Below are positions 1,373 through 64,000 of a DNA stretch of 64,000 nucleotides, piece after piece. Source of the stretch: Octopus sinensis (taxonomy: Eukaryota); NCBI RefSeq assembly GCF_006345805.1, contig NC_043009.1:19096001-19160000 (forward strand), in the 5' to 3' direction. The translations under genes and the position numbers were made by a program. The notes beneath the pieces were generated by a model. It worked only from the letters and a program-made list of their open reading frames with translations, ran no database searches and had not been told where the DNA came from. How positions within the stretch are numbered: position 1 is the first letter of the stretch; each line of letters opens with the position of its first letter.

Positions 1373-1597
1373 GTATTACTTTATCTTTTCCTCCCAGAGG
1401 CTGTAGTCACGCATTGAGAGTCACCATTGGATTGATTTTTTTGTCATTTACACGACTCTCATTTGTTTTGTTTTGTTGTTTTGATATAATGCGGGTTCGT
1501 ATGCTACCTCAGATAAAAATTTGTCGTTTTTAATGAATCCATATCTAAGCCCTATATTGAAAAGCTGTTTCACCTTAACATTTAAGATATTATAGTA

Positions 1598-5975: not shown

Positions 5976-6083
5976 TATATAAACATACATGTATGTATAT
6001 ATATGTATACACACACAATTCCATGCATGACGGTAATAATTAATGTATTTCAAAGTACCATTGTGATCTAATTTAATTTCCAG

Positions 6084-16340
<10,257 letters not shown>

Positions 16341-25193: not shown

Positions 25194-25408
25194 CATATAT
25201 ATATATACACATATTCATATGAAAGATTGGAAGTTTATATTTCTGAGATACCTGTAAGTTGCCTTCCATCAAATTTACATCGGTAGAATAAGTGCCAGTA
25301 ATATATTACACCATACACTAATGAATTACATGCACTATATTGACTTTTGTTGTCGAAATTAAATTACTGTTTTATTAAAATAACAGAATCAAAAAACTTA
25401 ATCCTACC

Positions 25409-25440
25409 TTAGCGTTCTTTAACTTCTTTCAGATTTTGAG
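25409..25440 (-). CDS. PAN gene candidate exon 7 ([10 protein letters not shown]), with a donor 1 nt after the stop
   Basis: Very strong acceptor tctgtcttctccccttttttctttag, donor AAG|gtagga after 25408, phase compatible with exon 6. Confidence 0.55.
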
Positions 25441-26932
25441 CTAAAGAAAAAAGGGGAGAAGACAGACGATATTATAATGACAATGGTTGGATATTTTACT
25501 GAAAAATTAAAGCAAACTTAAGAATCTTTCAACTATTAAGCCTTTAGAATATATAGATATACTGGCATTATGACCCGGCGTTGCCGGGTCATAGTGCTAG
25601 TTTGGTATAAATTTGTTAAATTAAAAATTTGGGGTAATAAAACATACAATGACATTAAAAAGACGAATTAAAATTCCAGAGAAAAATACATAGAAGATAA
25701 ATATACAAATTTACAAAAATACATAAAAGTTCATCTAGTTTCGGAGATGCGCCAATTAATATGAAACATATATATTTAAGATTGACACTCCCCTCGTCAG
25801 GATGTTTTTTACACACAACACATAGTACACGGAAACATATGCACAATTACATACCGGCTACATGCGAAAGACCAAACATTACGTACTCCCAAAAATTGTT
25901 ATAGATACTGAATGCTACTTAATAAGCATATAATTTAATCTAGCAGCCATAGTAAATGGTATGTGCACAGCTCCATCTGGGCTAATTCACTTTTGCACTC
26001 AATTAAATTTTTAATCTTTTAATTTCTCCCATTCATGCAAAGCCACATATTCGAGTTCAAGTCCTTGATACATTTTATACTAATTGCTATTTTTTCTTTT
26101 AATTGTTATATTACGATTTAATTACTATACTTTAGTTTTATTTTAATTATCACTTACTATATTTACTATATCTAATTCAATTGTTATTATTACCTCTAAC
26201 TTTTATTGCTATTTTTATTTCTAAATTTACTTATGGAACGTCGAGTGGATCTTATGCATACACTATATTTTTATATGATGTTTATATATTTATATACTAG
26301 CAGTATCGCCCGGCGTTGCTCGGGTTTGTAAGGGAAATAACTATATAAGCATTTTTAGAGATGTAAAGTATAATAGCCATCTCAATATGGCTAACCACAA
26401 AGGGGGGGGGTTACTGTAGATTTTTACGTTCTGAGATTTAATAATACATTTTTAGGGAGTTACTTCCCTTATATATGCCAAAAGTGCATTAAAAATGGGA
26501 AAAATTGATGGTAAATTTTTTTTTAAATCGTAGACTCATCGTAGACGCGCGCTAATACCCAGAAGGGCTCGATATGAATCACGACTATAAGATACCCGGT
26601 TTTGGTTAAACTACACCGCAAAATGTGGGAGTAGTTAGGAATTTAAATCGTAGGAGACAGACAGCACACAACCTCACTTTTATATATAAAGATTACTATA
26701 TATTTCTAAACGTCGGGCTTTATATCTGTTCTGTAGATATAAATGAATATATGAATATATGTATGTATTTGATCTTTCAGTGGATTTTGTAGTGCTCTTG
26801 TAGTTGCTGCTCGCATTGCCTCCAATCGGATTAAAAATTGTATACAGCTCATTTGAGCACTACTATTCCAGTCTGTTATATATTTTGAGCGTTGTTGTCA
26901 CTAACGATCTCAAGATATAACTTTATATTTTG

Positions 26933-26984
<52 letters not shown>

Positions 26985-27195
26985 ATATACATACAATAGA
27001 GAGATGTTTTTGTTTCACTTTTAACACGTAATACTGAAATAGTGGAGAAGATATGATATTGCTGGGGGCTCGCCCTAGGCAAGAACTTGAACATTTTTAT
27101 TGCCCATGAAACTACATGGACTCTAAGTAAGGCATGTGTAAAATTTGAATCAAATTGGTTGTGTAGTTCTCAAGTTTTAGGGAAACACGCAGACA

Positions 27196-27241
<46 letters not shown>

Positions 27242-30200
27242 TTCTCAGTTTTATATAAAGAGAGATTAAAAGCAGTTTTATTGTGATACCGATATGAATA
27301 TATTTTCAGCCGGGCTATCACCCATCGAGCTTAGAGAAACCACAACACTGACAGAAACACAATTTCCTGAAAGGTTATACTATGCAGCCAATGCACAGTA
27401 GACTTTTTATTGTATATCCAATAAAGCAATGGGTATACAGAGGGTCAGTAAGCTGAAAGAGAAAATGGTTTCATACATGTACGATATACAGGATTAATTA
27501 GCCGTAAGAGCACCCAATAAAAGCAATATTTCATCTGCCTGGCCAGCTTGTTAGAAATAATTAGTAGCTTCTCTATATGCGACCAAATCACCAATGAGGG
27601 AAGATGTCACAAAAACATAGCAAGTTAGAGTAAGGGTGAAATGGGAAAGGTTCAGTGAACTATTACATCGACAGGAGTTAAAAGTTGTCTTTGAGAAACT
27701 CCGACATCAAAAGAGAGACAAACAATAAAGAAAAAGTTTAACCGGAACCATGCAACAGTGTAGACAGGCATTAAAGCAGAAGCAGTGGACATCATAGGAG
27801 CTCCTCCTTCGCGAGAAGACTTAGACACTCTTTCTGGAGGAAAATTTGCATCGAAGGGATAGAGTTTAAGCAAGATGTTCTGTTTCTGGAAGAAATTCGA
27901 AAACGTTATTGTCCCTGCATTATACCCAAGACATACAGCATTGATGGTGATACCCTTATGACTGTAATCTAGAAACTTCAAGATAGAAAAGCACCTGGAA
28001 GAGACTTGATTGTTGGATATTGGTACAAGCTAACTTTCTACCGACCATATTTTATCAACTTATACCAGTAAACACTCAATGGTAATATTAGCATACCAGA
28101 TTAGTTAGCTCTGGCAGACACAAACTGATTCCCAAATGCAGAACCACCCACATGACAAAAACTACTGGCCAATTGCATGCCAGAACTTAATGTATAAAGT
28201 GTAAATAGCATGTTTAAACCTCTTCGACCAAGGCCATTGTGAAAGTAATAACATCATCACAGCAGAACAAGCAGCTGGGAAGAAGGGAGTCTTGTAAATA
28301 AACAAAACTGTAATGTCAGAGGTGCGGAAGCATAGAAGGAACCTAGTTTCAATATGGCTAGACTGCAATAAAGCCTTTGACTTTGACCCCACTTATGGAT
28401 GCTAGAAGCCTTTCAACTTGCTAAAGTTCCAGTGAACATAGTCAAAGCCACAGCTGACATGAATAATCGTGGGTCACCATCTTGAAATTAAACACGAGGA
28501 GTGATTATATTATCACTGATAGAATATTCCAAGGGGACAGCCTCTCTGGGATGTTGTTTACACTTTCTGTAAACCCCATGTCATGAGGCTGATAACATAC
28601 ATAGATTGATAACTTCATAAGACTTGGAAAGTAGTTTCTTGAGCAGCATTTGCTGTCTGACAACCTTAAATACATATCCAAAGACGTCACACGACTCTAC
28701 CGCAATTTATCATCAGATGAAAAGATGAGCGTGTATCAGCAGAAGATCAGGCATGGATATGTTAATAGAACGCTCCGAGATGATAGTAACATTAATCATC
28801 AAAGCAGTTTATCATAGATGAATAACCAGGAACAGGAAATATAATTCAGGAAAAGATGCAAAATGAAACAACCGATGCAGGCTTTGTGGAGTTAACACTG
28901 AAGATATCATCCACATCGTAAGCAGTTGTCCAAAAGTGTCATAAGACATGATGTTGTATATACAGCATGTTTAAACCTCTTCTTCATGTCATGAAACATG
29001 ATGTTGTAGCTAGGACACTATATAATGAGATCTGTCGGAAGGATAAACGCGAAACCAAAGGAATAAGACCCCGCAATATGGTGAAAGCCATAGCTACTCA
29101 TAATAAAAATGAGTACTGGTGGAATGTCCCAGTGAAAACATCAATAAAATGTAAACATAATAGACCTGACGTAATGGGACAGAGAAGAGAAACTGTGTAC
29201 CGTTGTGGAAATCAGCTACCCAACGGATGTTAACGTAAAGCTAAAGATCAGTGAAAAAGAAAATACACTGAACTATTGGAAAAATTGCAGTTACTCTATC
29301 GAGATTAAAAGTTCAATTAGATACCTGTAATTATTACGGCACTGAGATATGCAACACACTGCCTAAATATCAATCTTGAGAAATTAGGCTTCTCAAAACT
29401 AGAAAGGAGAAAGCTGATGCGAAAACTATAGATTCAATCCATTACTGGAACTATAAAAATCTGTAAAACTTTCTGGAAGTTTATCATTTAAGTATATATG
29501 ATCATGTACAGATATGCAGGTATATGCATGAAAATGATTACATAAAACGAAACAAATCTGTACATATACACACATACATACATACATGTACTTGAAATTC
29601 CAATGAAAGAGCCTTGGATCTAGGTTAGAAATCAGATGTTTCTCTAAGACATCTTGAAATAAAACTGAATAATCACGTACATACATACATTACATACATA
29701 CATACATTACATACATAACATACATACATACATTACATACAAACATACATACACATTTCATTTGCTAAATGCAGGATTCAGTGAATTTGGTAATTTTACA
29801 TTGATGAGTCTATAAACGTACAGTATATGTTTTAACTTTTCTAACAAAATAAGACATGCATTCTTAATTCACTTATGTTGATGGGGATGTAAAACCAATA
29901 TAGCTTATCGAATTTGTCCGAGCATGACAATAATTCAAAATACGATTCAACTTCATCTCTCAACCAGTCATCCTTGTGAAATTTAATTTTCATCTATTTT
30001 CAAGGGTAATTCACACAGAAACACGCACTCACATACACAGACACAGACACTCCCTAAACTAATATACATGCGAACAATTTTGTTTCTCAGCATATTTGTA
30101 ACTTTTCGTATCTTTTTACTTGTTTCAGTCATTAGACTGCAGCCATGCTGGGGCACCGCCTTGAAGAGTTTTTAGTCGAATGTATTAACACCAGTACTTA

Positions 30201-30504
30201 TGTTTTAAAGCCTGGTACTTATTTTATTGGCATCTTTTGCCGAACCGCTAAGTTACAGGACGTAAACATACCAGCACCGGTCGTCAAGCGGTGATAGTGG
30301 GACAAACACAGACACAAAGACACGCGCGCCACGCACATGCACACACAAACACACTCATATAGTTTGTGTCTACCAAATCGACTCACAAGACTTTGGTTGG
30401 CCTGGGGCTATAGAAGAAGACATGTGCCTAAAGTGCCATGCAGTGGGACTGAACCCGAAACCACACTGCCACGCCTGCGTATAAAATGAATTAATAAAAT
30501 AATC

Positions 30505-30574
<70 letters not shown>

Positions 30575-33500
30575 CGTAAAATTCTTTTCCCTATAGCATG
30601 GCGACGGGAAACTAAAATAAACGACCCGAAGTATTTTGTTGCTTACAAAGAAATATAAAATTGTTTCTAAAACAAATACTCACATCCGTTTATTTCGTAG
30701 AAGTTCCAGTAATGTATACTTGGTTTTAAAGTAAAATCAAAATGTGTTACATTGGCTATATCACATTTTCTGTTTGAATGCTTGTATTCAACTGCCTCAC
30801 AAGCCTTTGTTTCCACACAGCGATCCAAACACTCTTTCAGTGAACCACGTGTAGTTGGGTAATAGTCGTAACCGTTGATGCTAGCTCCTAGTATGATGTT
30901 CATAGTACCACGTTCTGCAGTTGAGGAAAACATTAATGAAAAGAATTGCATCGTTGATGGCTAAAATAAACCAAAATATTACTATCGAAGACAAAGGTAC
31001 TCACACACCAAAGATTCTATCAGCAATTAAAGGAACAATTAATTTACATTCATTTACCAGTTTAGACAATCATAAATCATTTTATGAATAACAATTTCAT
31101 TACATCTGTTCTTAACTGAAGAAACGCTTAACAAATCAGGCGGTTAAGAAATAAAGTTTGATAGATAGACCTTGCTGAAGCTGGTAAAAATCTCGGTTTC
31201 GGGTAGGACGCACAATTTTCACTTTGGAGGCGTCGTCAGATAAAAGTATGCAGGTCGGACCATTTTTGGTATCATGTTCAAACGCGATACAATTCTTAGT
31301 TAACAAGCAAGTTGTGGCACATGTTTCTACATCATATTCTTTTATGTATTTGAATCTGTTGCCATCTCTAAGATAAGCATCTGGTACTCTCAAGAACATC
31401 CTTATGCTGGGCACTGTGAAAAGAAAACACCACAAATTTAGTATTACTCGCTTCAGGAAATATAAATATAAAACTAATTTGAATGCATACATATTTCTAT
31501 CTCTAAGTAGAGGTAAAAAAACTGATACTAGTTACTTAATGAAGCATTAGATTAATACAAGAGAATAAAGGTAATTTTAATGTGTGTTTCTCAAGAAAAG
31601 TGAAATCGTTGAAACGAGAATCGAAACTGGGTAAGGATTTAACTTGTTGCGAGTTTACTCATTGCACCCTCTCTCTATACTTTATATATAAATTTTATAA
31701 AGTTTTCACGATGTACCATCCAGTTTTAAGGAGTTGGTACTGTAAGTATATGGACATAGTACCGTTTTCTCGATTAAAATGTGAGTTCGTATATGGTCGG
31801 TGTGCTACTGATAAAATATTGCGTTTCAGTTATTTAAGTTAGAGGGAAAAATTTGACTTAACGGAAGATCAAGTCAAGAAGAAATTTATGCTCTCCAAAG
31901 TAGATTCTACTCTTGACACAATAAGGGCAGCCGTGGCAAAAGCTCCAGCAGAATCTGCTCTAAGATAACCATGGACTTCGTACAAGATATACAAAGAAAA
32001 ACTGTCTCGGACGATATGAAAGGAGAAACAGGAAACCTGTCTCCGGGAAGTTTCTTTTTTCTGGAAGAACAAACTCAACAGGATTCCACAAGATTCACCA
32101 GTTCTCCCAATTAAATGACGAAAGGTAAACTTCTGGTCTGTCATTGCCAAATGATCAACACCATATCTGTTCGCTAATGAGCATGTTGACAAAAGTTTAT
32201 AAATGCGAGGTTCCAAGATACTTTGGATGTCTTGAGCATATATCAGCAATCACCCAGACCATCAGAGAAGCAAAAAAGAGCTACAGCATACTCTCAGTAG
32301 TATGATTAGATCTGACCAAAGCCTACCCAAGTATGATCCACCAATTAATTCAGAGACCATTGAAGTAGGCAAGCTGATGCCTTGGAAAGAGTTACAACAG
32401 CAACGTCAAAGACACCATGACTCAACTAAACAATTGACTTAGAGCAGCCGATGATAACCAGCTACTCCGACGTTTTAAGGAATAGTTTTTCCAGTAAGGC
32501 ATCATACTCAGACTGCAAGGCTTATTCCTGCTACATCGTCATACAAAGGGAAACAATGGAAATATTGTACAATGAATTTGTGCAGAGTTGGCTAAGTTCC
32601 AGTTCGGTCTGCTTGTATGACAAAACCTCAACTGATAGAGGAATAATTCAAGCTACACGTAACGTAAGAGGAATTAGTTCATTTCCACAGTCTGAGGATG
32701 AGAAAGTCAGATACGTCAATAGATCATAAAGAGTGGAAGTGAGAGCCCCTGGAAGTTGTGAAGGAAGTTGAAACATATGGAAGCAGCAAGAGATTTGGGT
32801 AGGCAGTCAAGAAGTGTAGGACTTAGCAAATGCAGCATCAAGAGGTGGAGCAGTGGAAATAGCTGATACAATTGAAGGCCCATAGTACAGTGTGTCTTGA
32901 GGCATCAGAATAAGATCGTCATGAGAAAAAATTAGGGATTGTCTGTTAGGGGCAGGGAATGCAAGGAGACCAAGCACTCAAGCGACTGTTTCGGAGAAAA
33001 TACTGAAGAACACTCAGCAGGAAAAGTTGTCCTTGCTGCTGTGCGCTGTAGCCGACGTCTTGCAAGCCTCAAATAACGTTAAAATCCGGAATAATGCGGA
33101 CACATTCTGAAAGCTGTGTGAGAAAACTCTTTACACTATGAACCACATTTTGAGTGAATGTCCAAGATCACTGGCTGATACAAGTGAAGGAACAATAATG
33201 TATTTCCAGAAGTTGCCAAGAGGATAGACCAGAGAGCAACAGGGATTAACAAAAAAAGAATCAGCTTCCAAAGAGAACACGATACGTCTTCTTAATCAAA
33301 GTAGCTGTGGGTGACCCATTTTCTATTTTGTATCAAACCTCTGACTGAAGATCTGAAAGGAAAACTCATCCTTTCTGAAACAGAAAAACAGACAATAACA
33401 TCGTCCCAACCATATATGTTCTTTCTATTTAGTACAAAAACGATCATCGTGGTCAAACTCAATATTTTAAGAGGACAAGCTGGATATTTCACACTAACTG

Positions 33501-34572
33501 AAGAAAGCCATATACCGGATTTGATTAAGGAGTCAAAAGATGGCGTGGAGTTTAATCCCTATTGATATCGACTGCTGTAGTTGACAAGAGACCGCAGATG
33601 AAGCCCTTCCGCGGATGAAAGTTGATTCAGTACACGCTGCTCACTAAGGTGAGGGTTAGGGGCATAACTAAGGGATATAGCGCTTGTGATCCAGAGATGC
33701 CTGTTAAAGATGAGGTCTTTCCAACACTGCGATTGCTTTTGTCACAATCAAGAGAATGATCGTGCGACATCATTAAGTAGCTTCCGCGGTCTCTGCTTAG
33801 GGCAAGGTTCAGTCTGGTTTGCATTTGCATTTGATAATTGATGAATAACTGAATATTACATTTTAATATCATTTTAAAGGAGTGCAATTAATAACAGAAG
33901 CTTTAAACTCTCAAAACTTGCCTTACACGCAATATCTCCTTTCAGGTCAAAAACACAAGTCTTAGTAATATAGCTGATCGATTAAAACGACCAAACCACT
34001 TTCCGACAAATTTGTGAAATTATAGCTATGTAAAAACATCAATATTTTACAGAAAAGCAGTGAAGCTTGCACTCAATGTAAAAATTAAAAGCACTGACAT
34101 TTATTTTTGTCAACTTACTCCATTTTAGGCACATAAAATATTGTTAATAAATATGCAACCCACTTCAAGGTTTATTATTTTTGAGTGTAGTACTCACCAT
34201 CATTCAAACTGTAATAATCCCATCTATGAATACTGGCTGTGAGACTTTTGTCTTTATGATTTAAATCGGTCAAATCACATCGTCTTTGTTCAACTTTATA
34301 TTCAAACATTTTGCAGTTTTTCAATTGTTTGCAGTGTGCAGCACATCTATCGGCACTTATATCATCAAGTTTATCGAGATGGTCATATTTGTCGATAGTG
34401 GCTCCTTTTACAACAACCATTTTACCTTTATCTAGAAGATATTAAAGTAAATTTGATTACATACAATACTGAAACTTTAAAAGAATTTCGAAACGATTCA
34501 TCGTTTTCATTTTCATATGTTCCTTGAAAGAAATATTTCCACATCTTTGTCTGCTTTTATGTATTAACTTCA

Positions 34573-34651
<79 letters not shown>

Positions 34652-36485
34652 AAGAGAATACACTTGTATGAATATATCAGGATGAGTAAAAAGTAAGCAA
34701 CGTTTTGAAACATGAAATTCATCACAATATATTTCAACAACGCGGAAATTGTATTCATCAAAGTAAGTACCATTACAATCAATGAGTTACAAGTTTGTTT
34801 ATTCCGGTGATATATCAATCTGGAATTCTGGAGCTGATGAACTCCTTGAACGCACTTTCAACAATGGTTTGATTTTTGAACTTCTCTCGCAGGGAACCAT
34901 CAAAGTAATTGAAAAAGTAGTCGTCTAGGGAATAAGCTGGATGGGGGAAGAACTTCATAGCCAAGTTCCCTCAACCTCTGGAGCATCATTAGTGAAACGT
35001 GTAGTCAAGCATTGCCATGAAGAACGATTGGCTCTCTTCTGCTGACCAGTCTGGAACGCAGGTGTAGCAGTTTTTCGTTCATTTTGGTAATTTCATGGCA
35101 ATATGTTTCTGCAGTAATGTTTTTTCTGGGTTTTAAGAAGTTATAGTGGATGAGTCCAGCAGTACACCACCCAACAGTCACCATAACCTTTGAAGAGCTT
35201 GGATTTAGGGAAGGTTTCCGGTGCTTCATTTTTGTCTAAAATTATTAGTGTACAGAATCCACTTTCATCGCAAGTTACAATACGGTCGAAAGAAGGAGCG
35301 GTCCGGTTACAGAGAAGCGACAAACAAATTTCATATCTGCGCATTTTCTGATTTTCATTCAAATCGTGTGGTACTCATTTGGCGAACTTCTTTGATTTTC
35401 CGATCGCATGCAAATGATCGCAGGCAATTTCTGGCTAACTTGAAGTTCTTTTGCCAGTTCTCGAGTAGTTTTACGTGGATCTTTCTCGACGGTCTATAAT
35501 TGACCGTCATCGATGACAAAAAAGGCGTCCACTACGCTCATGATCTTGAAGGCTCAGGTTTCCACCGCGAAAGCGTTTAAAACATTTTCGAGCTGACCGC
35601 TCACTGGTCATTTCCTTACCAGACGTTTCGTTGATATCGCGAGCAGTTTCAACTGCTTTACGTCCTTTATTGAAGTTGAATAGCGAAATTGCTCGAATAT
35701 CGCGCTGTGACACTTCCATTTCAGATGAATGTAACAACGGTGAAAAATATATCAATGTTAATTTATTGATGCATTTGGGCAAGTCTATGTCTGTATTATC
35801 AGACAACTGCAAAAAAATGTTTAGAAAAAATCCAAAGCTCTGCAAAAATCCGGTACAAATTCTTCATGGTTCAAAACATTGCTTACTTTTTACTCAACCT
35901 GATATATTTATTGTTTTATATATTTATGTTTTATATAAGTTTTATTCATACGTATATCAGTGTAATGGTTAAAAAGAAATTATGTCTACTTCTGCGCAGA
36001 ATGCCGAATGTTAGAATCGGTAGATTACTATTTCAAATAAATTGTAACTATATTTTTCGTGATTACATTATTGTAGTTCAATAATTTTGTTGGTTTTTAT
36101 TTCTTTTTAATCTTAATAATAGGAAATAACTTTCAGTCGATTGTGATTAGTTTTTAGCTAGTTTCTGTTTTATTGTCTGAAATACAATCTAATTCGCCAG
36201 TTTACTGTACTGGACAATAGATATCGGATAAACTTCCGGAAGGAATTGTATTTGCTATTTGGTTGTATGATGTTGTTAACTTGTCTTACTTTCCGTCATT
36301 ATACAGATCTTATAGGCGCAGGAGTGGCTGTGTGGTAAGTAGCTTGCTTACCAACCACATGGTTCCGCGTTCAGTTCCACTGTGTGGCACCTTAGACAAA
36401 TGTCTTCCACTATAGCCTTGAGCCGACCAAAGCCTTGTGAGAGGATTTGGTTGATGGAAACTGAAAGAAGCCCGTCGTATATATG

Positions 36486-36563
<78 letters not shown>

Positions 36564-36583
36564 TGTGTGTTTTTTTTGTGTGT

Positions 36584-36614
<31 letters not shown>

Positions 36615-39600
36615 CATGCGTGCGTGTATGTCTGTGTTTGTCCCCCCAACATCGCTTGACAACCGATGCTGCTGTGTTTACGTCCCCGTAACTTAGCGTT
36701 TCGGCAAAAGAGACCGATAGAATAAGTACTAGGCTTACAAAGAATAAGTCCAGGGGTTGATTTGGTCGACTAAAGGCGGTGCTCCAGCATGGCTGCAGCC
36801 AAATGACTGAAACAAGTAAAAGAGTAAAAGAGTAAAAGAGTATATCTCGTACTCTAACTCAGTCATGGCTATTTATTGCCTTTGTTAAAATACCATGTTA
36901 TACAGATTAGCTTTCAGAATAAGGATACTTTGAGTAACTCCAAACATTCCTCTCTTGAGCTATATTGAATACGGAAGTGCTTTTGGTATCATTGGAAAAA
37001 AGCAATTTCTTTTTTTAAAAGTATTCGATTTGACATAGCGCCAATTTTTCTGGAGAATGAATAATGTCGCAAGTTTCGTAGCGGACACTTTAATTCAGAA
37101 GATAATAGTCTAAATTTCGACCTTATGTAAACTTTTCTCTTTAATAAACAGTTAAATTCATTTTATGTCGGAATATTACGAAATAATATAATTTTAAAAA
37201 ATCATACTTGGTATAATTTGAAAGTAATCATATTTCGTTCTTCGAACAACTTTAATTCCGTCTTCAGATGCATCATGTTTTGACAAAAAGCAGGTCAATG
37301 CAAATTTATGATAAACAAATGATTTACAGCCTGTAGTAGTTGCGCATTTTTGTGCACACATTTCAACTGGAACTGCCTTGATTATCTTCAGAAGAGGTCT
37401 GACAGTTAAAGAAGCGTTGAATACTTTAATGTAAGTGACATGGTCAGCTTCGAATAGAGAGGAATCCTTTCCTGGGAAGAAAACAAATGGAAAGAACAAT
37501 TATGCATTGCCTAAAGACATATCAACTGTATCTCAACAGCAACATTTATTATACGGGTTTGAAAGGTGTGGGTGCAGGATCGATACTATTCTTACATCTG
37601 GAAAACTATAGGATAAGAAGTCGAAGTTCACAATTTTCTGCACTTTTAGGAAACAGGGCTTCTTGGTCAAGCTTTATAGAAGACATGCGTGTTGGGAGGA
37701 GAGTTTCGAGCATTAATAGATGAAGTGGGGCTTTCAGACATTCATTATCAAAGAGTTGGAATCTTTTGTCTGTAGTTGGGATTTAATATTTTAATTGTTG
37801 TGAGGTAACACAGGATGCCCTAAAGCCACCACACCAGTTATCTCATTTATGATACTACAGCCTATTTCACTGTCACAAGGTATATTAAAGTGCACCCAAG
37901 TTACTCTTCCTCACCACTAGATCAATTCATAATTTTGCATGCCTAAATATCAGCTCAGCTGTAGAAGGAATAACGAGAGATAGCTAAGAATTTTTAAAAT
38001 TTTGAATGATTGGTTAGTTTCTTCATATATGGTTGTTTTAAACCGCTCTTATCATCCGCTATATTTTATTATATAAGAAATATAGAAAGTTCTATTTAAA
38101 ATTTGAGAATCTAAAGAGGCGGGTATACTTTTAATATGCATGAATACTAAAAACATATGTTTTTATTTTTTATTTCCATTTTCAACTGCACTATTTTTAA
38201 ACTACGAGGTGGTATCAAAAGGTTCCCGGACTAGTTATGTTTCATAAAAAATAGTTTATTCATCTCCTTCGAAATAGTCACCTTGCGCAGCAATACACTG
38301 GTCCCAGTGTTTGCGCTACTTTTGGAATCCGGCTTTGTTTTCTTCCGTAAGCGAGTCGAGGACCTTCTGATCTCGACAACGGTGTTAAAACGGTGACCCC
38401 TGAGCTGCATTTTCATTTTGAGGTAGAAATAGAAGTCCGCAGGTACTAAATCTGGCAAACAGGGCAGATGCAGAAGTGATACCATGTTGTTTTTGGCAAG
38501 AAACTCGTGAGTGAAGAGAGCTCAGTGACAGGGTGCATTGACATCATAAGAATGCAATTGTTTGCGCTCCACATATCCGGTCACTTTCGCCAAATGTACT
38601 TCTTAAAATGTTTCAAAACATCGATGATTGTCTTCCGATGATCCTCATGCACAAGTTGATGGATTTTATCCACGTATCTTGGGTTGACGCCCGTGGCAGG
38701 TCATCCAGATCGCTAATTGTCTTCCAGGAACGTTCTCCCGCTTTTGAAGCGCCCGTGTTACTCGAAACATTGCGTACGACCCATTGCCATGTTGTAGTAG
38801 GCTTGCCGAAACATACTCAATATCTCTGTGGCAGATTTCCTAAGTTTAAGGCAAAATTTTACGTTGGCTCTTTGTTCCAACTTCTTGACAAAAATCACAA
38901 ACAACAGCATACACGTGATCAAAAAAGCATGAATTTCACAACTTACGAAGTAAACACTGCAATGTCACTCGGCACACTGTCTCATGAAGGTCATTGCTAG
39001 CTCTCACTGTGCCCACAATCATGTGCTGCCATCTGTTGGTGTGCTACAGAACTAGTCCCAGAACTTTTTGATACTACCTCGTACTTTTCCAGGTTCAGTC
39101 AATGAAGAATATTATAGAGAGAGGGAGAGAGAGGGAGAAAGTGGGGAGATGGGAGGGTGGAGGGGGGAAAGAGGGGGGATGGAAGGGGAGAAGGAGATGG
39201 GAAGGAGAGAGGGAAGGGGAGATGGGGAGAGAGAAAGTAATGTTTGTGCCACTTTTGCGTGGCCGTTCCACGCAGAACAATATTACTACAGGGAAACATT
39301 GTTTTTTCCCCAGCTAGTTCACAACACACAACCTGTGTCTGATATACTGCGAGTAAGAGAGCAAACCACTCCCCTTTTCCAACGTGGAAAGATCAGTAGA
39401 CCAGCTGGTTTCTGGGTGTGGACGCTTGCTCGGGGAGCACAACTACATTATCTTTCAGAATAGCAGTAATATGAAGATTTAAAGGCGTTACTCAATTTCC
39501 TAATTGACCAACGGTTTCTACTACGGCAATTTTTATGTAGCTTACAGACTTATTCGTATAGTTCACTAATTTTATCTTTGATTTTGGTACACCTAAATCA

Positions 39601-42600
39601 AAAATAATTTTAAAATAAGGACACTACACTTCTTCGAAATTGCATCAATCTGTTACACTCCTTCTTTCGGAACACCCATATTTTATCGTAACTTTTTTTT
39701 TATTCAACCAGTTTTCTATTTTATCTCAAAGTTAGTGGAGCTATAATCCTTCTTAGTGAATGCAACTGCATTTAATTTGTTCCTGAATTGGATTCGCATA
39801 GAAGTGGTTGCGAAAAAAATCACTGTCTTCCTTAAGAATGTTATTCATTCACTGCCATTGATGAATGATGTGGAAAAGATGTAACTATGAATGCGATATC
39901 AATAGTAACTTTATGAATACATTATCAATGACTCTAAATGTAACATTAGCTCTGAATCAAAGTAATAAACATAATTGGAGATAAAATATCTGTAAATCTA
40001 AGTATGACATAAGTAAGAAAACTGTAGCATTCGATGTATGTAATATGAAAGCGACTCTCGGCATGCAACGTAACAATGGCATTTAATATATAGTTAGCGG
40101 CACTCATGAATATTTCACGGAATTAATGGTAAACTTATAGGGTAATTTCTGAAAACGTTATCCAAAAAACCTGCAAGTGTAGCCTGTGTTGTGTCTGTCT
40201 CAAAAGATAGGCGTTCATCTGCTATTCATCGAAAAGTGACAGAAATTGGAATACGATGATTACTTTATGCACTTTATATATACACTTTATATACTTTATG
40301 AACAATTTTATAGTTCTAATACGCAGCACTCTCCCTCTTTATCTCTCGCCTTACCCTCTTTTTCTTTCTCTTTTTCCTTTCACTCTTCGCCTTTCTCTTC
40401 AACTAACCACGCGAAAGCGTTACAGACGGGCTAAGTAACGGAGGAAAAAGCTTAGTTAAAAAAAAGAATTACATAATGCACTCACCACCACCTCTCCTTC
40501 CCCTCCTCCTCCCCTACTCTGCATCAGACTTTGTATATATGTAACACGAATATAAATTGGTTTTGTGTAAACTTAATAAGAACCACCGGTATGTAATAAA
40601 ATGAATAACTAGAATTATATAATCCCAACGGTAATTTGATTTATGTAACCAAAATTAAATTCCTCTTTCAATGGGAGAGATAGAGAGAAAGAGAGATATA
40701 GAGAGGGTGTTACTTAATAAGACTGGGAAATAAAGAAGTAAATATATTAGCATGGAAAGAAAATCGTGCTTCAGTTTTAACATGATCACTTTGAGTATAG
40801 TTTTTGATACTCTAAAGTAATCGATAATGTTTACACCCTAATGTTTTCTCTTTTTTCTGCATATTTTATACTTTAGTGATAAAATTGGTATCTATTTTAC
40901 CCTTTTTAAATAAGTTTAGCTCATATCCGTATCAGGCATGTGGTATGGATTCAAAAGGGGCTTTTGGATGGTAGCAACAAGAAATATTCGTTCTGTCTAT
41001 GGAAATAAAACTTTAAATATCCGGTCGTGCCAACGAGAGTTTGCCCAGTTTCGCTCAGGAAATTTTTCTGTCATAGATTACCCTCGACCTGGACGTCCAA
41101 GTTCTGTTAATATGGAGCTTCTGAAAACCGTAAAATACAAAGCAAACTGCACGAGAATTAGCAAAACAGGAAAACTCAAGTCCCAGTTTGATTATAAAAC
41201 ACCTTCAAGCTAAAGTATCTAAACCTGGTCAGTGGATCCCTCATCATCTGACTGCTTCTCCGTTTAATCGAAGTCATTCAAAAGAATGAGCTGTATCCGA
41301 GGAGTTTTGAACCTTTTTTAAGGAGTAACGGTTATAACAGTCCTAAATTATTGTAATTTTCGTATTTCATTACTAAACCGCCAACTTTTTGTTCCAGATT
41401 GAAAAAGGTGGAAGTAAGAACACTTTGAATACATCAGACAATTTGCAAGCTCACTATTCAATAAAGTTCTGTGTTAAACTGGACATTGCTGTTACAGAAA
41501 CTTATGAAATGCTTCAGACTGCTTGTGGATTATCTTGTATGAGCCGAGTATATGTTTTAACTGGTAAAAGAGGATCAAGGACAGTAGAATAGATGTGAGA
41601 GACAATGTGTGGGAGGGAGAGGGAAGTTAGAACATTAGAACTGGTTGAGAAAATTCGCAATTTTCTGGGTGAAGACAGTGGAAAGATGAAAGAGGCTGTG
41701 ACAAGGGTCCTGGACACATTCACTTAGTAGGACTTCCATGGAGCCTTCACGGCGTAGGTGGAGAGCTACAAGTGAATTGAAGTCAGAGGATCCTACTTTG
41801 AAGTAGATTAAAGTTTTGTACTTCTTTGAAGTTAATGTCTTCCCTGAAAAGTCTCAAAATCTCTAGACTTTCTACCGAACGTTTCATAAGTACATTCATC
41901 CAAACTGGTGAAAAGTGGCTCCTCTATCATCATTCCCAACGAAAAGGACAATGGTTGGTATTGTTTGATTCTTTCACCCGCACGATTTTCATTAAGTAAA
42001 AAGAAACAAACTCGGATTTTTTGCGTGGAATCAAGTACCCTGAACTCCTAATATGCTGCAAACTCCTTATTTTTGTTCGGAAAATAAAGATATTTATGTT
42101 TTGATATTATACTTTTACTTCGTTTCACATATACAAGCAAAATCTCTAACGTTTTTTTTTAGATGAATTTATTGTTCGTTATCCCTCCACACACTTCTTT
42201 ACCACTAACTTCTATAACCTCCGCATTTTCCCTTATTCATTTCAAACTTCCTTGAATTTTCAATCTAAAGTAATCCACACTCTCTCGAAAACGTATTTCT
42301 GCAAAATGTTATCTAAAATTATGGGTAAAGAAAGAAATAGCCAAAAATATTTGAAAATGGAGGTGGGAAGTGAAATTTCTGAGGGTTCCACCCCACTCCA
42401 CCCCGATTTCCGGGGTCCAAAACGGGTTTTGTGGCATATTAGGAGGTCACCGGAATTCAGTCAACGAAAAAAAAATTCCAATGATTCCGGGGGGGGGGGG
42501 ATGGGGCATCCAGTTTCCCACCCACCCCTTTTTTCCGAACAAAAACAAGGGGGTTACAGCATATTAGGTTAGTGTACTTGATTCCATGCAAAAAATCCGA

Positions 42601-45600
42601 GTATTTTTTTTCTTAGTGATGGGGTATGAAGAGAGTCGTCTATGATAAAGTATTAAACTAAAACGAAACTGTTAGTCGTCAGTTGGAAGAACTTCACGAA
42701 AAACTCCAGAAAGGCGTTCCTCACTGGACGCTTTTCAGTTTAATCGAAGTCATTGAAAAGAATGAGGTGCATCCTTGGAGTTTTGAGACTTTTTTAAGGA
42801 GAGAGAGTCTTAACAGTCCTACATTAAAAGGATTATAACAGTAGCGACGAGATTTAAACAACGTACGGGGAATTAATAAAGTCGAAGGGTATCTAAACAA
42901 CTCATGAGGAATTAATGGGGTTAATAGAAACTCGAAGAGGAGTTAATAATCTCACAAAGTTTTGTTGTGCGAATTTTACGAAAAAATCGTAAAATAATGT
43001 AAAATTTGTTGGCCGGTTTGCTCGAGTTGCAAAAACAGCAACAACAACTGAAAGAATAACAACAGGAGCAGCTAAAACTGCAAGAGCAACAACATAAGCA
43101 ACAACAACAACAAATACTGCAGTCACTGAAGCCGTAGGTAAGCCAGAAAAAGCATTTTCGGCAGACTATGTCACGAACTCCATAACAGAATTCAAATACG
43201 AACCTGACGAAGGAGTTACCTTCGCAGAGCATACTACAAAAGACATAAGCAAATCTAGAAAGAATGTAAAGATTTGGACAACAAGATGAAAATGCGCTTA
43301 ATCTTGAGAAAACTAGCGGCAACAGAACATGAGCGATACAATAATTTTGTACTCCTAGGAAAACCTGCGGACATAAACTTTAATGACACAATAGAGATAC
43401 TGTGTAAAATTTTCAGTGAAAAAGCTCATTGTTCAACACACGTTTTGCTGATAGAGTTAACAGGGAATGCGAGAAGTTCAAGCTGAAAGAATTAACGCAA
43501 GATATGTTCAAATGCCTTATTTTTACACAGACTTACTGCCGAAAGGATGCAGCAGTTAGAACCAGAATTCTCGCAAAGCTGGAACAAAACCAGAATTTAA
43601 TCCTACAGCAAATGTCAGAAGAGTATGAAAGGATAGTCTTATTAAGACACGACACAGAAGAAAATGAACGTAAATGATTGTTTCCAAGTAAAGCAAATGT
43701 GAAATAGAATAGAGATAAAGTGTTTTCTAAACAAAAAAATAAACAGGACAAAAAACAAGAAATAAACCCATGTTTTGCATGTGGAAGTATACACCTGAGG
43801 AAAAATTGTCCATTTAAAAAAGCGGAGTGCTTTCATTGGGGAAATATAGGACATATACATTTTTTATTGCCCACAAGGGGCTAAACATAAAGGGGGCAAA
43901 CAAGGACAGACAAACGGATTAAGTCGATTACATCGACCCCAGTGCGTAATTGGTACTTAATTTATCGACCCCGAAATTATGAAAGGAAAGTCGACCTCGG
44001 CGGAATTTGAACTCAGAACGTAACGGCAGACGAAATACCGCTAAGCATTTCGCCCGGCGTGCTAACGTCTCTGCCAGTTCGCCGTCTTTTATGGAAATAT
44101 AGGACATATAAAGACGCACATTAGAACGAAGATGACAAAACGTCAGAACAAAGGAAAAAGAATGTCATCGAAAGAGATTGATAATATTACGATGAGGAAA
44201 TTCGTGAAGGTGAAAATCAGAAATACAAGTGTTAAAATACATTTGGACACTGGTATTGATGTCACCATTATAAACACACACACACACAAAAACGCGAAAA
44301 TATGTCGGTAAGCCGAAATTAATTAAATCGAAAAAAATAGCACGTGGTGTTAAGGGGAAAATAATATATTTCTTCGGTGAATTCATATGCAATGTAACAT
44401 TTCGAGGTCAAACAAAAAAGGCTAAAATATATGTGTTAAAAAGTTCACCTAATCTATTCGGCTCAGAGTGGACGGAACTATTCAAATTATGTGATACGCC
44501 CACAAGTGTCCTGTGTGAAAATATAGTTGGGCCAGGCAAAGGTTCAAATGCGGCTGAGAGACTGAAGCAAAAAGTTTCAGTCAAACAAAGTGGAACACCG
44601 GTATGTAAGCCAAAACGAAATGAAAAATTGCCCACAATAAAAAGTAAACATTGTTGAAAAGTCGATGTTCAGTGGTTGAGACTACAACACATCGATTTCG
44701 CTGGTCCTTTAAATGCTTCTTACGATTTAGTGGTACTTGATAGTTCTCGAAATGGCCTGAAATTTGTAAGTGTATAAAATCAATCTCCTCAACTGTGATA
44801 AACTATTTACAAGAATTGTCTGAAATATTTCGCATCCCAAACAAGATAATGTTTGACAATGGAACGCAATTTGTGTCTAGCGAATTTTTAAAATTTTGTG
44901 AAACGTTCGCGGTAGAACATATAACTACGGCGCCATACCATCCCAGATCTAATGGACAGGCAAGAATGCTTTGTCGATACCGTCAAAAGAGCCCTTAGAA
45001 AATCGAATGAGGAAGTCACGGATGAGGTAGCTCTACAACAATTTTTAAGAGTGTACCGTGTAACACCAAATCCGAATACACCAGCAGGTAGCTCCAAGGA
45101 AAGTAAAATCAGTCCTTGATAAATTGCTACCTGGCAAGAAAAGAAAAGTGCCTGGGAATACATAGTAAAATTCTTTAAAGTTGGTGAAAAGGTGTATATG
45201 AGGGCATACAAGAATAGAAAGCAGAGTTGGGGAGATGGCGTAATTACCAAATGCATAGGTAAAATGTATGGGGTAGAAGAGGCATACAAAAGAGACGGGA
45301 ACCAACGGAAAATAATCTGGTACATCAAAAGAGGCGGTTTCGATCACCTATTCAAAATATTTCATTCATATTCGTACCCAATGTCACATCAGAACCGTAA
45401 ACGCTACTACAATGCTTTCCTTCCCCTCAAAACGTACTGCTTTTGACTACTGAAAAGTAATAAATATTGGTTTCAGGTTCTGACACAAAACCAGCAATTT
45501 CGGTACATCGACCTCCCTTTTCAACTGGTTCTTATTTTACCAACTCCGAAAAGATGAAAGTTAAAGTCGACCCCGGCGGCATTTGAACTCAGAACGTAAA

Positions 45601-46601
45601 GAAATACCGCTAAGTATTTTTTTCAAAGCGCAACGATTCTGTTGAAAAGTAACAGATATTAAGAAATAAAATTATGAACGCCATTTTACTCTTCGAGATT
45701 GAGCATCGGTATTGATTACTGGCTGATACAGGCGCATTTCGATTAATAAATCTTGTGCAAGTTATCAAACTTATGACACCTCAGTCCATTATTCTCCATA
45801 AAATATGGAATCTTTGTACGATGTCAAACATAAGCTAATATTTAGAAATGAACGTTTTGTTGTGTTATCAGAGCTTTAAAAAAGGGGGAATATTTGTTCT
45901 GCTGTTGAATAAGCATTGAATAAAATGTGAGTTATTAGGCCCATAAATAGAGAATAGTCCTCAGTAAAACGAAACACCCTTTGGAAACGCCTTCAGCAAT
46001 AGAAGATATTAATAAATGTCTCACCTGTTTGGTCTAATTTAAATGTATGAAGCATTTTAGCCTGCACCATCAACTGAAGGAAGGCTGCAGAAACAAAGTG
46101 AAATGGTATTTAGAAACGAAAAAGAAAACAATAAGAAATTTACAGTTTACTTATGATATGAACGAGGTGTGTGAATGAAATATCAATTTGTGCTTGTGTT
46201 ACTTAGAAATATGCGCTTTGGAAGCTAGGGTTATGAAAACATCTTGTTGATCATTTAGTATTTTGGAGTTTTCCTAAATTTAATCTTGATATAACGTATC
46301 AATAATGTTAGACTTTCGTAACCCTGCTCTTCTTCAATGTATTGTCCAAAGCTGATATCACAGGTTTGATAGAAAACTGAATCTAAAAACAGATTTATAG
46401 TAACATGTTAATTAGATCATCACCGCCGTGAGGTGTCAACTCATGCTTGAGAAATGTCATGAATTCTAAATCGGCAATTATTTACCGTAAGCTATTTCAC
46501 AAGAAAATATATCGAAATAAAAATTTATCGCTTACTTTATCCCACAAAGTATACGCACCGAAAATTGCTATGAAGCATGGCAATAGCTCTCCTGACTTCA
46601 T
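25409..46601 (-). CDS. Secreted four-PAN/apple-domain protein, 7 coding exons: 46601-46559, 46084-46025, 37471-37208, 34431-34198, 31413-31171, 30914-30684, 25440-25409 (368 aa predicted)
   Basis: All introns are GT-AG and phase 1. Exon lengths 43+60+264+234+243+231+32=1107 nt give one open frame, with signal peptide [23 protein letters not shown] and four C-x3-C-x5-C-x11/12-C PAN cores. The last exon is the least certain. Confidence 0.8.
26297..26695 (+). mobile_element. Helentron/HINE (DINE-like) non-autonomous element
   Basis: ACTAGCAGTATCGCCCGGCGTTGCTCG terminus and cacttttatatataaagat end; internal segment shared with about 2330-2375 and 8405-8450. Confidence 0.65.
27600..29500 (+). mobile_element. 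Decayed R4/Dong-like LINE
   Basis: [40 protein letters not shown]; same 3' end recurs at about 24020-24110. Confidence 0.75.
30115..30480 (-). mobile_element. tRNA-derived SINE (same family as 36315)
   Basis: Reverse complement of the 36315 element (gactgaaacaag tail, ccccagcatggctgcag). Confidence 0.8.
30684..30914 (-). CDS. PAN gene exon 6, PAN domain 4
   Basis: Acceptor ttttcctcaactgcag, donor T|gtgagt, 231 nt; [23 protein letters not shown]...WNFY. Confidence 0.9.
31171..31413 (-). CDS. PAN gene exon 5, PAN domain 3
   Basis: Acceptor gttttcttttcacag, donor G|gtctat, 243 nt; [24 protein letters not shown]...RDFY. Confidence 0.88.
31870..33650 (+). mobile_element. Hero/R2-like RLE-type LINE remnant inside PAN intron 4
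   Basis: [40 protein letters not shown]...STKTII. Confidence 0.7.
34198..34431 (-). CDS. PAN gene exon 4, PAN domain 2
   Basis: Acceptor tttaatatcttctag, donor G|gtgagt, 234 nt; [23 protein letters not shown]...WDYY. Confidence 0.9.
34790..35720 (-). mobile_element. Mariner transposon remnant
   Basis: [32 protein letters not shown]. Confidence 0.85.
36315..36841 (+). mobile_element. tRNA-derived SINE with internal (TA)n/(TG)n and (AAAGAGT)n tail
   Basis: Head ggcgcaggagtggctgtgtggtaag...gttcagttcc. Confidence 0.85.
37208..37471 (-). CDS. PAN gene exon 3, PAN domain 1
   Basis: Acceptor tttgttttcttcccag, donor A|gtatga, 264 nt; [23 protein letters not shown]...YDYF. Confidence 0.9.
38205..39081 (-). 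mobile_element. Internally deleted mariner with both TIRs and TA target duplication
   Basis: TA-cgaggtggtatcaaaaggttcccggactagtt ... aactagtcccagaactttttgatactacctcg-TA; [13 protein letters not shown]; [17 protein letters not shown]. Confidence 0.85.
40930..41850 (+). mobile_element. Two mariner fragments separated by a Gypsy-LTR-like segment
   Basis: [23 protein letters not shown]; IKFCVKL..TETYEML; 41265-41345 matches the LTR at 42738-42820. Confidence 0.6.
42660..45330 (+). mobile_element. Internally deleted Gypsy/Ty3 LTR retrotransposon
   Basis: LTR end then PBS-like gtagcgacgag at 42841; gag with CFACG..H...C knuckle; protease LDTG; integrase [22 protein letters not shown]; no RT found. 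Confidence 0.85.
43858..44092 (-). mobile_element. SINE inserted in the Gypsy gag knuckle, 18-bp TSD
   Basis: ggaaatataggacatata at 43840-43857 and 44093-44110. Confidence 0.9.
46025..46084 (-). CDS. PAN gene exon 2 ([20 protein letters not shown])
   Basis: Acceptor ttcactttgtttctgcag, donor AG|gtgaga, 60-nt symmetric phase 1-1 exon that completes the signal peptide. Confidence 0.8.
46559..46601 (-). CDS. PAN gene exon 1 ([14 protein letters not shown])
   Basis: gcagccATG context, hydrophobic stretch, phase-1 donor G|gtgcgt, TATA and Inr upstream. Confidence 0.75.
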
Positions 46602-46904: not shown

Positions 46905-47601
46905 TACATATATATATACACACACATGTGTGTGTGTATGTGTACATTAGATGCTTCCCTCTCCAGCTGTTCAAGTAGGTGTCCACATTTTCATCTGCCT
47001 ATATTACATGGGAATGAATATATTATTTTGGGCAATATTTTATAAATATGTACTTTCTTAAATCGTAAAAGATAGATTTTTTTTGTATTTTAATCCAATC
47101 AATACATTTATGAGCAGTTTAGTCTCCTTTACGAAATATTTAAACAGGTTTATAACATCGTTAACCGATAAATAGAAAATCTAACCAAAAAATAATTTAA
47201 TTTTTATCATTATATAAATATTGGTTTCAAATTTTTAATACAGGTCCAGTAATCTTGGGTCGATTACATTAACCCCAGTGCTGAAGTGGTATCTATTTTA
47301 TCGGTCCCGAAAAGATGAAAGGCAAAGTCAACCTCGGTAATGACTGACGAAATACCACTAAGTACTTATACGGCGTTCTAACAATTCTACCTGCTACAAA
47401 CCATCATATAAATATGCAATGTAATTTCTGAAGGCAGTTTTGGACCTTCGTGTATTGAAGTGATATTTAATGTTCATATAGAGAGCTGAAAAATGTTTAA
47501 TCAATTGAAAGCAAAAACAATTTCAATACAATAAAGTCACATGTTAAAACATGCAATATACCGTTTAATTAAGATAATGTATTATTTAAGTACAGACTGA
47601 A

Positions 47602-47842
47602 GGCGGCGAGCTGGCAGGAGCGTTTGCACGCCGGGCGAAATGCCTAGCCGTATTTCGTCTGCCGTTACGTTCTGAGTTCAAATTCCACCGAGGTCGACTT
47701 TGCCTTTCATCCTTTCGGGGTCGATAAATTAAGTACCAGTTAGGCACTGGGGTCGATGTAATCGATTTAATCCGTTTGTCTGTCCTTGTTTGTCCCCTCC
47801 GTGTTTAGCCCCTTGTGGGTAATAAAGAAATAGGTATTTCGT
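47602..47842 (+). mobile_element. Full-length tRNA-derived SINE
   Basis: Same family as 14277 and 43858. Confidence 0.9.
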
Positions 47843-63534: not shown

Positions 63535-64000
63535 TACTTATACATGCGCACATACATACACACACAAACACACACATATATATGTGTGTATCTACATCTA
63601 TATGTATATATGTATATATATATATATATATACAATATTCATGATGTTTATATCCTAGTGCATTTCCCAGTCAACATCAAACTTACTAGAAGCGACTTAA
63701 GAAAACACACCAGATTACGAAGTCATGGACGGATATATATATTGGTTATCTATAATACTTGGTAGGTAAAAGCTTTCGTACAATTGGGAGCAAATAAGGT
63801 ATTCCTTGGTTAAAACGGGTGGAAAGCAGAGACACAATGGAAGACTGGCTAGCACTTCGAATTTTGCTCCTGTCATTAAGTCTCTTAATCTTTAAATAAC
63901 CGATTCTGTCTAAGTGCTTTGGAAGTTGTTAGGAATACTTATAGGATCTTCTTATATTTCAATCTTAGAAATAATTCAAAAAGTCACTTACCAAATATCT

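Follow-up and report, generated by a model that had tools for sequence, protein, structure and literature searches.

PAN domains are protein- and carbohydrate-binding modules, and in various animals they serve protease-docking or salivary-type roles. HGF and plasminogen carry one N-terminal PAN domain, followed by kringles and a protease-like domain. Factor XI (FXI) and plasma prekallikrein carry four PAN-superfamily (apple) domains in tandem, with six cysteines per domain, and a serine protease. The apicomplexan microneme lectins TgMIC4 and Sarcocystis SML-2 are secreted proteins made solely of tandem PAN/apple domains. The present analysis concerns a four-PAN (4-PAN) gene in a 64,000-nucleotide stretch of the Octopus sinensis genome, referred to as the window (NC_043009.1, positions 19,096,001 to 19,160,000; CM016871.1 of GCA_006345805.1, ~19.096-19.160 Mb). 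Positions 25409-46601 of the window, read on the minus strand, very probably constitute LOC115218683, an intact protein-coding gene that is conserved across octopods. It encodes a conserved, probably secreted, non-catalytic protein that is made of two di-PAN cassettes.

A six-frame scan of the window outside microsatellites finds exactly four C-x3-C-x5-C-x10-13-C matches, all of which are located on the minus strand (Table 1). The open frame of each core starts behind an AG acceptor with a pyrimidine-rich tract and runs up to a GT donor, and both sites are in phase 1. The gene was rebuilt independently and runs on the minus strand from 46601 to 25409, spanning 21.2 kb. Its seven exons are separated by six GT-AG introns, all in phase 1, and join to a coding sequence (CDS) of 1107 nt that yields a product of 368 amino acids (aa). 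This product matches XP_029644473.1, titled “uncharacterized protein LOC115218683 [Octopus sinensis]”, with 100% identity over its entire length. The first-pass annotation of this DNA lacked the strand, but its proposal of seven in-frame phase-1 exons and a 368-aa product was reproduced in full. The four C-x3-C-x5-C-x11/12-C cores that it described were located at the spacing it gave, one in each of the exons 3 to 6. The correct seven-exon gene had therefore been recovered from raw sequence by that first reading. As a gene model it is already known and equals the RefSeq and UniProt entries.

The short exons at both ends are conserved as well. The donor and the length of exon 1 are kept in O. 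bimaculoides, O. vulgaris, and Argonauta, and an in-frame TAA lies 15 nt 5′ of the ATG. A phase-0 donor for exon 1 at 46536 (AAA/GTAAGC; slashes mark splice or cleavage sites) was rejected, as it breaks the frame and the phase-1 donor is kept in three Octopus species and, as TCG/GTTCGT, in Argonauta. Exon 2 was chosen among 399 enumerated open exon candidates with phase 1 at both ends for its strong acceptor and its CAG/GTGAGA donor. Its counterpart in Argonauta measures 45 nt and is likewise phase 1-1. Exon 7 is shared by three Octopus species and Argonauta.

Sequence comparison returned, in addition to the identical RefSeq entry, orthologs from three other octopods: CAI9731647.1 from O. vulgaris (99% identical), XP_014785566.1 from O. 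bimaculoides (90% identical; UniProt A0A0L8G081, “Apple domain-containing protein”), and GAB1601772.1 from Argonauta hians (~60% identical). Exact protein-to-genome mapping places the same seven exons in all three genomes, with every intron GT-AG and in phase 1. The gene occupies ~19-22 kb in O. bimaculoides and O. vulgaris, and in Argonauta it takes up only 7.0 kb. A more distant homolog (P0003) is a 381-aa open reading frame (ORF) on a 1304-nt contig from a JGI metatranscriptome and is 47% identical. This contig is intron-free across the positions of the last four junctions and comprises the four PAN domains, a tail, a stop, and a 158-nt 3′ untranslated region (3′UTR) with AATAAA near its end. 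At transcript level, the protein of this homolog thus stops after PAN4 and the tail. All 16 domain cysteines are invariant among the five homologs. None of the orthologs is characterized; their entries are all “uncharacterized”, “hypothetical”, or “Apple domain-containing” automatic annotations.

Between O. sinensis and O. bimaculoides, the synonymous divergence (dS) is 0.12, the nonsynonymous divergence (dN) is 0.05, and dN/dS is 0.41, which is significantly below 1 (Fisher p = 8e-4). Two small introns are 91-95% identical between these two species and the CDS is 93.9% identical, so only dN/dS is informative in this close comparison. Against Argonauta, the PAN exons stand out from introns that cannot be aligned. 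An exhaustive HMMER search gave only 100 relatives at E <= 1e-3. No further relatives of the metatranscriptome homolog emerged from a second, word-indexed search, and a scan of JGI metagenomes with the ortholog alignment gave no match. Short Logan matches (P0007, P0011, P0014, P0022, and P0042) look like genomic exon ORFs running into introns, not like transcripts. The strength of the gene model derives from its reconstruction from sequence, the RefSeq identity, the structure conserved in four octopods, and the transcript of the homolog.

The 368-aa product matches the Pfam family PAN_1 (PF00024) in four stretches with a score of 112.3 bits (cut-off 21.4; E = 9.9e-33), and PAN_4, PAN_2, and PAN_3 likewise score above their cut-offs. 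No non-PAN family exceeds its cut-off in the Pfam scan of the product, which includes the absence of protease, kringle, and zona pellucida (ZP) matches. Hydrophobic 19-residue windows (Kyte-Doolittle hydropathy, KD, > 1.6) start only at residues 3-9, and the same windows reveal no transmembrane segment elsewhere in the protein. The PAN-only content and the N-terminal signal-like segment of the first-pass annotation are both borne out by these results. The N terminus consists of MKSGE, a 16-residue stretch, and QA/K, resembles the N terminus of the Argonauta protein, and represents a plausible signal peptide. The predicted mature protein has a mass of ~40 kDa, a pI of 8.8, and three N-x-S/T sites. 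Of its 17 cysteines, the precursor carries one in the signal peptide and four in each domain. The four domain cysteines take on the C2-C5/C3-C4 spacing of the PAN core (HGF-N type) and lack the C1-C6 pair of the FXI apple domains, which suggests two disulfides per domain. The C-terminal tail had been described as short and basic. It is indeed short (10 residues), but its net charge is only +1 and not conserved, as the Argonauta tail is neutral and that of the metatranscriptome homolog is long and acidic.

The four domains fall into two types. PAN1 and PAN3 (type A) share 33% identity and PAN2 and PAN4 (type B) share 35%, compared to 13-19% for the cross pairs. The protein is thus organized as (A-B)x2, or two di-PAN cassettes. 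In the distant metatranscriptome homolog, type B is much better preserved (58-61%, with PAN2 at 58%) than type A (32-38%). The di-PAN (A-B) cassette family is defined here for the first time and is not a curated family. The best HMMER matches after the orthologs are giant octopus proteins with PAN and Sushi domains, for example LOC118764742 (2643 aa, 21 PAN stretches) and SVEP1-like models (CAI9728790.1). When searched with hidden Markov models (HMMs) for A and B made from this gene, the PAN-Sushi giants display a strict ABAB order (11 pairs in LOC118764742, 7 pairs in LOC106869390), and annelid multi-PAN proteins score weakly, as generic A. An AB cassette also heads the zonadhesin-like VWD-C8-TIL-VWA protein GAB1605714.1 from Argonauta and is present in LOC118765861, an Octopus protein with a di-PAN unit, a Thr-rich linker, and WSC domains. 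The octopod ADAMTS-like metalloprotease XP_014774988.1 terminates in a B-B pair instead of an A-B pair. Each PAN domain is encoded by one exon in both the 4-PAN gene and the di-PAN-WSC gene, and the boundaries in the 4-PAN gene are all phase 1-1. A single-exon domain with phase 1-1 boundaries is the classic form of a shuffled module.

In the proposed mechanism, the signal peptide would be cleaved near VQA/K and the product secreted. The mature protein would then act as a non-catalytic, soluble, multivalent binder of extracellular ligands, with glycans or matrix/mucus glycoproteins as the likeliest partners. Extracellular ligand or glycan binding is probable by analogy, given the binding properties of PAN domains elsewhere, the occurrence of the same PAN types in matrix, mucin-like, and protease proteins of octopods, and the conserved WSC-bearing neighbor that is described below. 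The type B domains would be the likelier ligand-binding units, since they are better conserved. A more far-reaching idea can be put forward with rather low confidence: the A-B cassette may have arisen in octopods (possibly cephalopods) as an innovation for extracellular recognition, and shuffling of phase-1 exons would have carried it into proteins of the matrix, mucin-like, and protease classes. In this view, the bare 4-PAN protein would represent the cassette in soluble form and would serve as a lectin or adaptor restricted to the lineage. Its targets would be surfaces rich in glycans, such as those of mucus, the egg coat, cuticular linings, or microbes, which it would cross-link, perhaps in concert with the di-PAN-WSC neighbor.

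Several points weigh against the reading of the locus as an intact gene for a secreted PAN protein. Expression and the six junctions rest on the RefSeq model, on conservation, and on the transcript of the homolog. The call of a signal peptide is based solely on hydrophobicity and the -3/-1 rule, and the inter-domain arrangement in the AlphaFold2 (AF2) model is based on an alignment of five sequences. The dN/dS value corresponds to a fairly relaxed constraint. A donor-like AAG/GTAGGA (25403-25411, minus strand) follows right after the stop and has an AAG/GTAAGA counterpart in Argonauta, which makes a 3′UTR intron with an unannotated non-coding last exon possible. Finally, literature searches found no mention of LOC115218683, LOC106880218, LOC115218587, or the XP and UniProt accessions, and no ligand, tissue, or phenotype is reported for them. 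A literature search for “Apple domain-containing” and octopus gave nothing, and a search for “PAN domain” and cephalopod gave one biomineralization-proteome paper that merely lists PF00024. The main text of two argonaut eggcase papers contains no PAN or apple protein.

The 3′ end is the subject of two rival explanations. RefSeq holds a further model on the same chromosome, ~260 kb away, LOC115218587 (XP_029644340.2, 363 aa), which coincides with the 4-PAN protein over its first 358 residues, continues past the PAN4 donor into intron 6, and ends in ..INGCEYLF. If this were the true product, the 32-nt last exon would be an artifact, or the two loci would be recent paralogs with different 3′ ends. 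Such a scenario is very unlikely. The copy is situated in a block (L006, CM016871.1 18,835,345-18,871,289) that is 99.55% identical to positions 25799-56576 of the window over 30.8 kb. The block breaks off at an assembly gap of 100 N, ~360 bp short of where the last exon would lie, and that contig simply does not contain the exon. In O. bimaculoides, O. vulgaris, and Argonauta, on the other hand, the last exon, its acceptor, and the stop are all kept. LOC115218587 is most likely a truncated model from an uncollapsed haplotype, or else a very recent duplicate cut by the contig end, and not an alternative isoform. The conserved donor-like sequence after the stop, together with the very large multidomain proteins that are the closest paralogs, could instead indicate that the seven exons are the 5′ part of a larger gene whose downstream exons add a protease, Sushi, ZP, or transmembrane segment as in FXI/prekallikrein or the PAN-Sushi giants. 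This is hardly to be expected, as the in-frame stop is found inside the same last exon in four octopods and the transcript contig of the homolog finishes after PAN4 and the tail with a 3′UTR. Moreover, the window harbors no PAN or Sushi-like exons elsewhere, and the O. bimaculoides and O. vulgaris genomes have no other called gene within 10 kb. If repeat-like matches are set aside, the downstream blocks conserved in Argonauta stem solely from a convergent gene that is transcribed from the opposite strand. Its Argonauta copy (L004 19675-26977, minus strand; no Pfam match) begins 2.7 kb beyond the 4-PAN stop and leaves little room for extra exons on the same strand.

The two remaining alternatives concern the function of the locus. 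The moderately high dN/dS and the lack of a transcript-derived copy of the exact protein in the searched collection, in which the single further cluster member (P0007) resembles an ORF from a genomic exon, would fit a decaying or functionless offshoot of the PAN-Sushi genes that is annotated because its ORFs are still open. However, Octopus and Argonauta have an intact ORF and retain all 12 splice sites, the 16 cysteines, and the phases of the exons, dN/dS lies significantly below 1, and the homolog is transcribed, which makes decay a scarcely credible explanation. Somewhat less remote, although still improbable, is a specialized role of the same protein, either as a docking platform for a separate protease or zymogen, with the four domains arranged like the apple disc of FXI, or as a salivary anti-hemostatic or collagen-binding factor like leech LAPP. 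The four domains do align in order with the FXI/prekallikrein tetrads (Foldseek E ~ 1e-12), but the superposition on the FXI disc is poor (TM-score 0.23, root-mean-square deviation (rmsd) ~17 Å) and the C1-C6 apple disulfide is absent. There is also no expression or proteome support from salivary gland or hemolymph, and no link was found in the literature. An intact gene for a soluble PAN protein is therefore preferred over all four alternatives.

Upstream, the 4-PAN gene is paired with the di-PAN-WSC gene. The di-PAN-WSC protein is of a secreted type and contains an A-B cassette, a mucin-like Thr-rich linker, and WSC domains. Its gene, LOC118765861, is found next to the duplicate copy of the 4-PAN gene, 17.1 kb upstream and in divergent orientation, and a first coding exon of such a neighbor is found in the window at the same distance of 17.1 kb from the 4-PAN ATG (Table 1). 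In Argonauta, the PAN-A and PAN-B exons of the di-PAN-WSC gene (46% and 66% identical; L004 1656-1363 and 967-731) lie 8-9 kb from the 4-PAN gene on its upstream side and are encoded by the opposite strand. As the divergent pairing is also present there, the head-to-head pair is conserved across octopods. The first tblastx comparison with Argonauta was swamped by microsatellite matches, and the comparison was filtered for these. Short conserved blocks on the plus strand of the window (1422-1589, 6073-6177, 7407-7502, and 16200-16322) represent small Cys-containing exons and are collinear with the convergent Argonauta gene, which encodes 320 aa. The Argonauta locus additionally contains a second, exact copy of the PAN1 exon's 3′ half (L004 6770-6892, aa 77-114), which is located ~5 kb upstream of the real exon and before the ATG and constitutes a local duplication or an assembly artifact.

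The first-pass annotation had placed a TATA element and an initiator (Inr) at near-canonical spacing upstream of the gene. Both motifs are present, with 33 nt from the first T of the TATA element to the Inr A and 64 nt from the Inr A to the ATG. In Argonauta, CCAGT and a TATA-like element occupy the aligned positions, with an equal spacing of 33 nt. The motif itself is not specific, as the TATA-N20-28-TCAGT composite occurs four times in the window vs 1.45 expected and the promoter region is rich in AT microsatellites. What gives it weight is solely its placement 5′ of the ATG and the fact that it is conserved, and the promoter is plausible on these grounds. Downstream of the stop, the candidate poly(A) signal AATAAA is present in O. 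sinensis and O. vulgaris and reads AAGAAA in O. bimaculoides.

The introns had been called filled with transposable elements. Mariner and integrase fragments, a dispersed repeat, and at least eight microsatellite arrays are indeed found in them, and the description is fair in spirit but only partly borne out. The dispersed repeat is ~235 bp long, may be a short interspersed element (SINE), and has copies that are ~90% identical at 43846-44089, 14266-14504, and 47600-47831 of the window and at 8768-9000 and 12510-12748 of L006. No tRNA genes or Rfam families were detected in the window, and a Pfam scan of its 120-aa ORFs gave only sub-threshold reverse transcriptase hints, downstream of the gene. 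These belong to a transposon-like ORF at 20657-21848 (plus strand) with sub-threshold RVT_1 and zf-RVT hints. A second ORF at 15032-15523 (plus strand) appears transposase-like by eye and has no Pfam match.

Table 1. Coordinates of the 4-PAN gene and of other features in the window
Feature	Position	Strand	Description
Candidate core promoter	46698-46663	minus	TATATAA 46698-46692, 24-nt gap, TCAGT 46667-46663; motif match only
Coding exon 1	46601-46559	minus	43 nt; ATG and first 14 codons of signal-like peptide; phase-1 donor TCG/GTGCGT
Coding exon 2	46084-46025	minus	60 nt, phase 1-1; remaining hydrophobic core, likely cleavage region (..LMVQA/K..), poorly conserved linker
Coding exon 3	37471-37208	minus	264 nt, phase 1-1; PAN1, type A; C73, C77, C83, C95; terminates ..YDYFQ
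Coding exon 4	34431-34198	minus	234 nt, phase 1-1; PAN2, type B; C152, C156, C162, C174; terminates ..WDYYS
Coding exon 5	31413-31171	minus	243 nt, phase 1-1; PAN3, type A; C232, C236, C242, C255; terminates ..RDFYQ
Coding exon 6	30914-30684	minus	231 nt, phase 1-1; PAN4, type B; C310, C314, C320, C332; terminates ..WNFYE
Coding exon 7	25440-25409	minus	32 nt including TAA; 10-residue tail and stop
PAN cysteine cores	37290-37358, 34277-34345, 31250-31321, 30763-30831	minus	C-x3-C-x5-C-x11/12-C
Candidate poly(A) signal	25371-25376	minus	AATAAA, 33 nt past the stop; uncertain use
Decayed mariner/Mos1-type remnant, intron 3	35008-35863	minus	Transposase_1 E = 4.9e-14 (35008-35235), HTH_48 E = 6e-13 (35510-35863)
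Second mariner HTH_48 remnant, intron 2	40920-41210	plus	Pfam E = 4.5e-07
LTR-retrotransposon integrase (rve) fragment, intron 2	44744-44995	plus	Pfam rve E = 1.3e-09; weak aspartyl-protease match 44066-44308
First coding exon of di-PAN-WSC neighbor	63726-63762	plus	37 nt, encodes MDGYIYWLSIIL; 12/13 residues match LOC118765861; phase-1 donor GTAGGT

As a discovery, the gene matters little, since the RefSeq/UniProt model is equal and PAN is a familiar module. The A-B cassette and the conserved pair of the 4-PAN and di-PAN-WSC genes nevertheless provide a handle for the study of cephalopod matrix or mucus proteins. The octopod PAN-Sushi, WSC, zonadhesin-like, and ADAMTS-like proteins are ~30% identical to the 4-PAN protein, and the giants, the WSC protein, and the zonadhesin-like protein share its four-cysteine pattern. 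The difference is that these relatives add Sushi, WSC, VWD/VWA, or metalloprotease/TSP1 domains, whereas the 4-PAN protein is the bare cassette, present twice.

Membership in the PAN superfamily is shown by the PAN_1 profile, the core cysteines, and the PAN fold of the predicted structure. The AF2 model (predicted local distance difference test (pLDDT) 81, predicted template modeling score 0.62) repeats a strand-helix-strand pattern four times, and pLDDT falls below 50 for the linker (residues 24-36). The best single-domain Foldseek matches are the HGF N domain, with an rmsd of 2.3-3.1 Å over ~79 columns and 22-28% identity. The octopus domains thereby resemble the N-terminal PAN domain of HGF and plasminogen both in predicted structure and in the likely two-disulfide core, but the octopus protein is not of the plasminogen/HGF type, as no kringle or protease-like domain follows its PAN domains. 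Neither does it belong to the PAN-ZP apical-matrix proteins of nematodes and insects, since a ZP domain and a membrane anchor are both absent.

With FXI and plasma prekallikrein, the octopus protein shares four tandem PAN-superfamily domains that align domain by domain. It falls outside the apple subclass, as each domain has four cysteines and no third disulfide pair, and the four domains are not followed by a trypsin-like serine-protease domain. An FXI-like disc arrangement was rejected because the predicted model does not reproduce it, as its low TM-score indicates, and because the C1-C6 pair is missing. A further difference is that each apple domain is encoded by two exons in vertebrates, compared to one exon for each PAN domain in the octopus. 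The nearest solved structure by sequence is TgMIC4 (4a5v), although the similarity is weak (E = 0.004), and SML-2 is among the Foldseek fold matches. The microneme lectins and the octopus protein are alike in their composition of nothing but tandem PAN/apple domains behind a secretory signal, which in the octopus is predicted. The sequences are very distant, and the organisms and their biology are unrelated.

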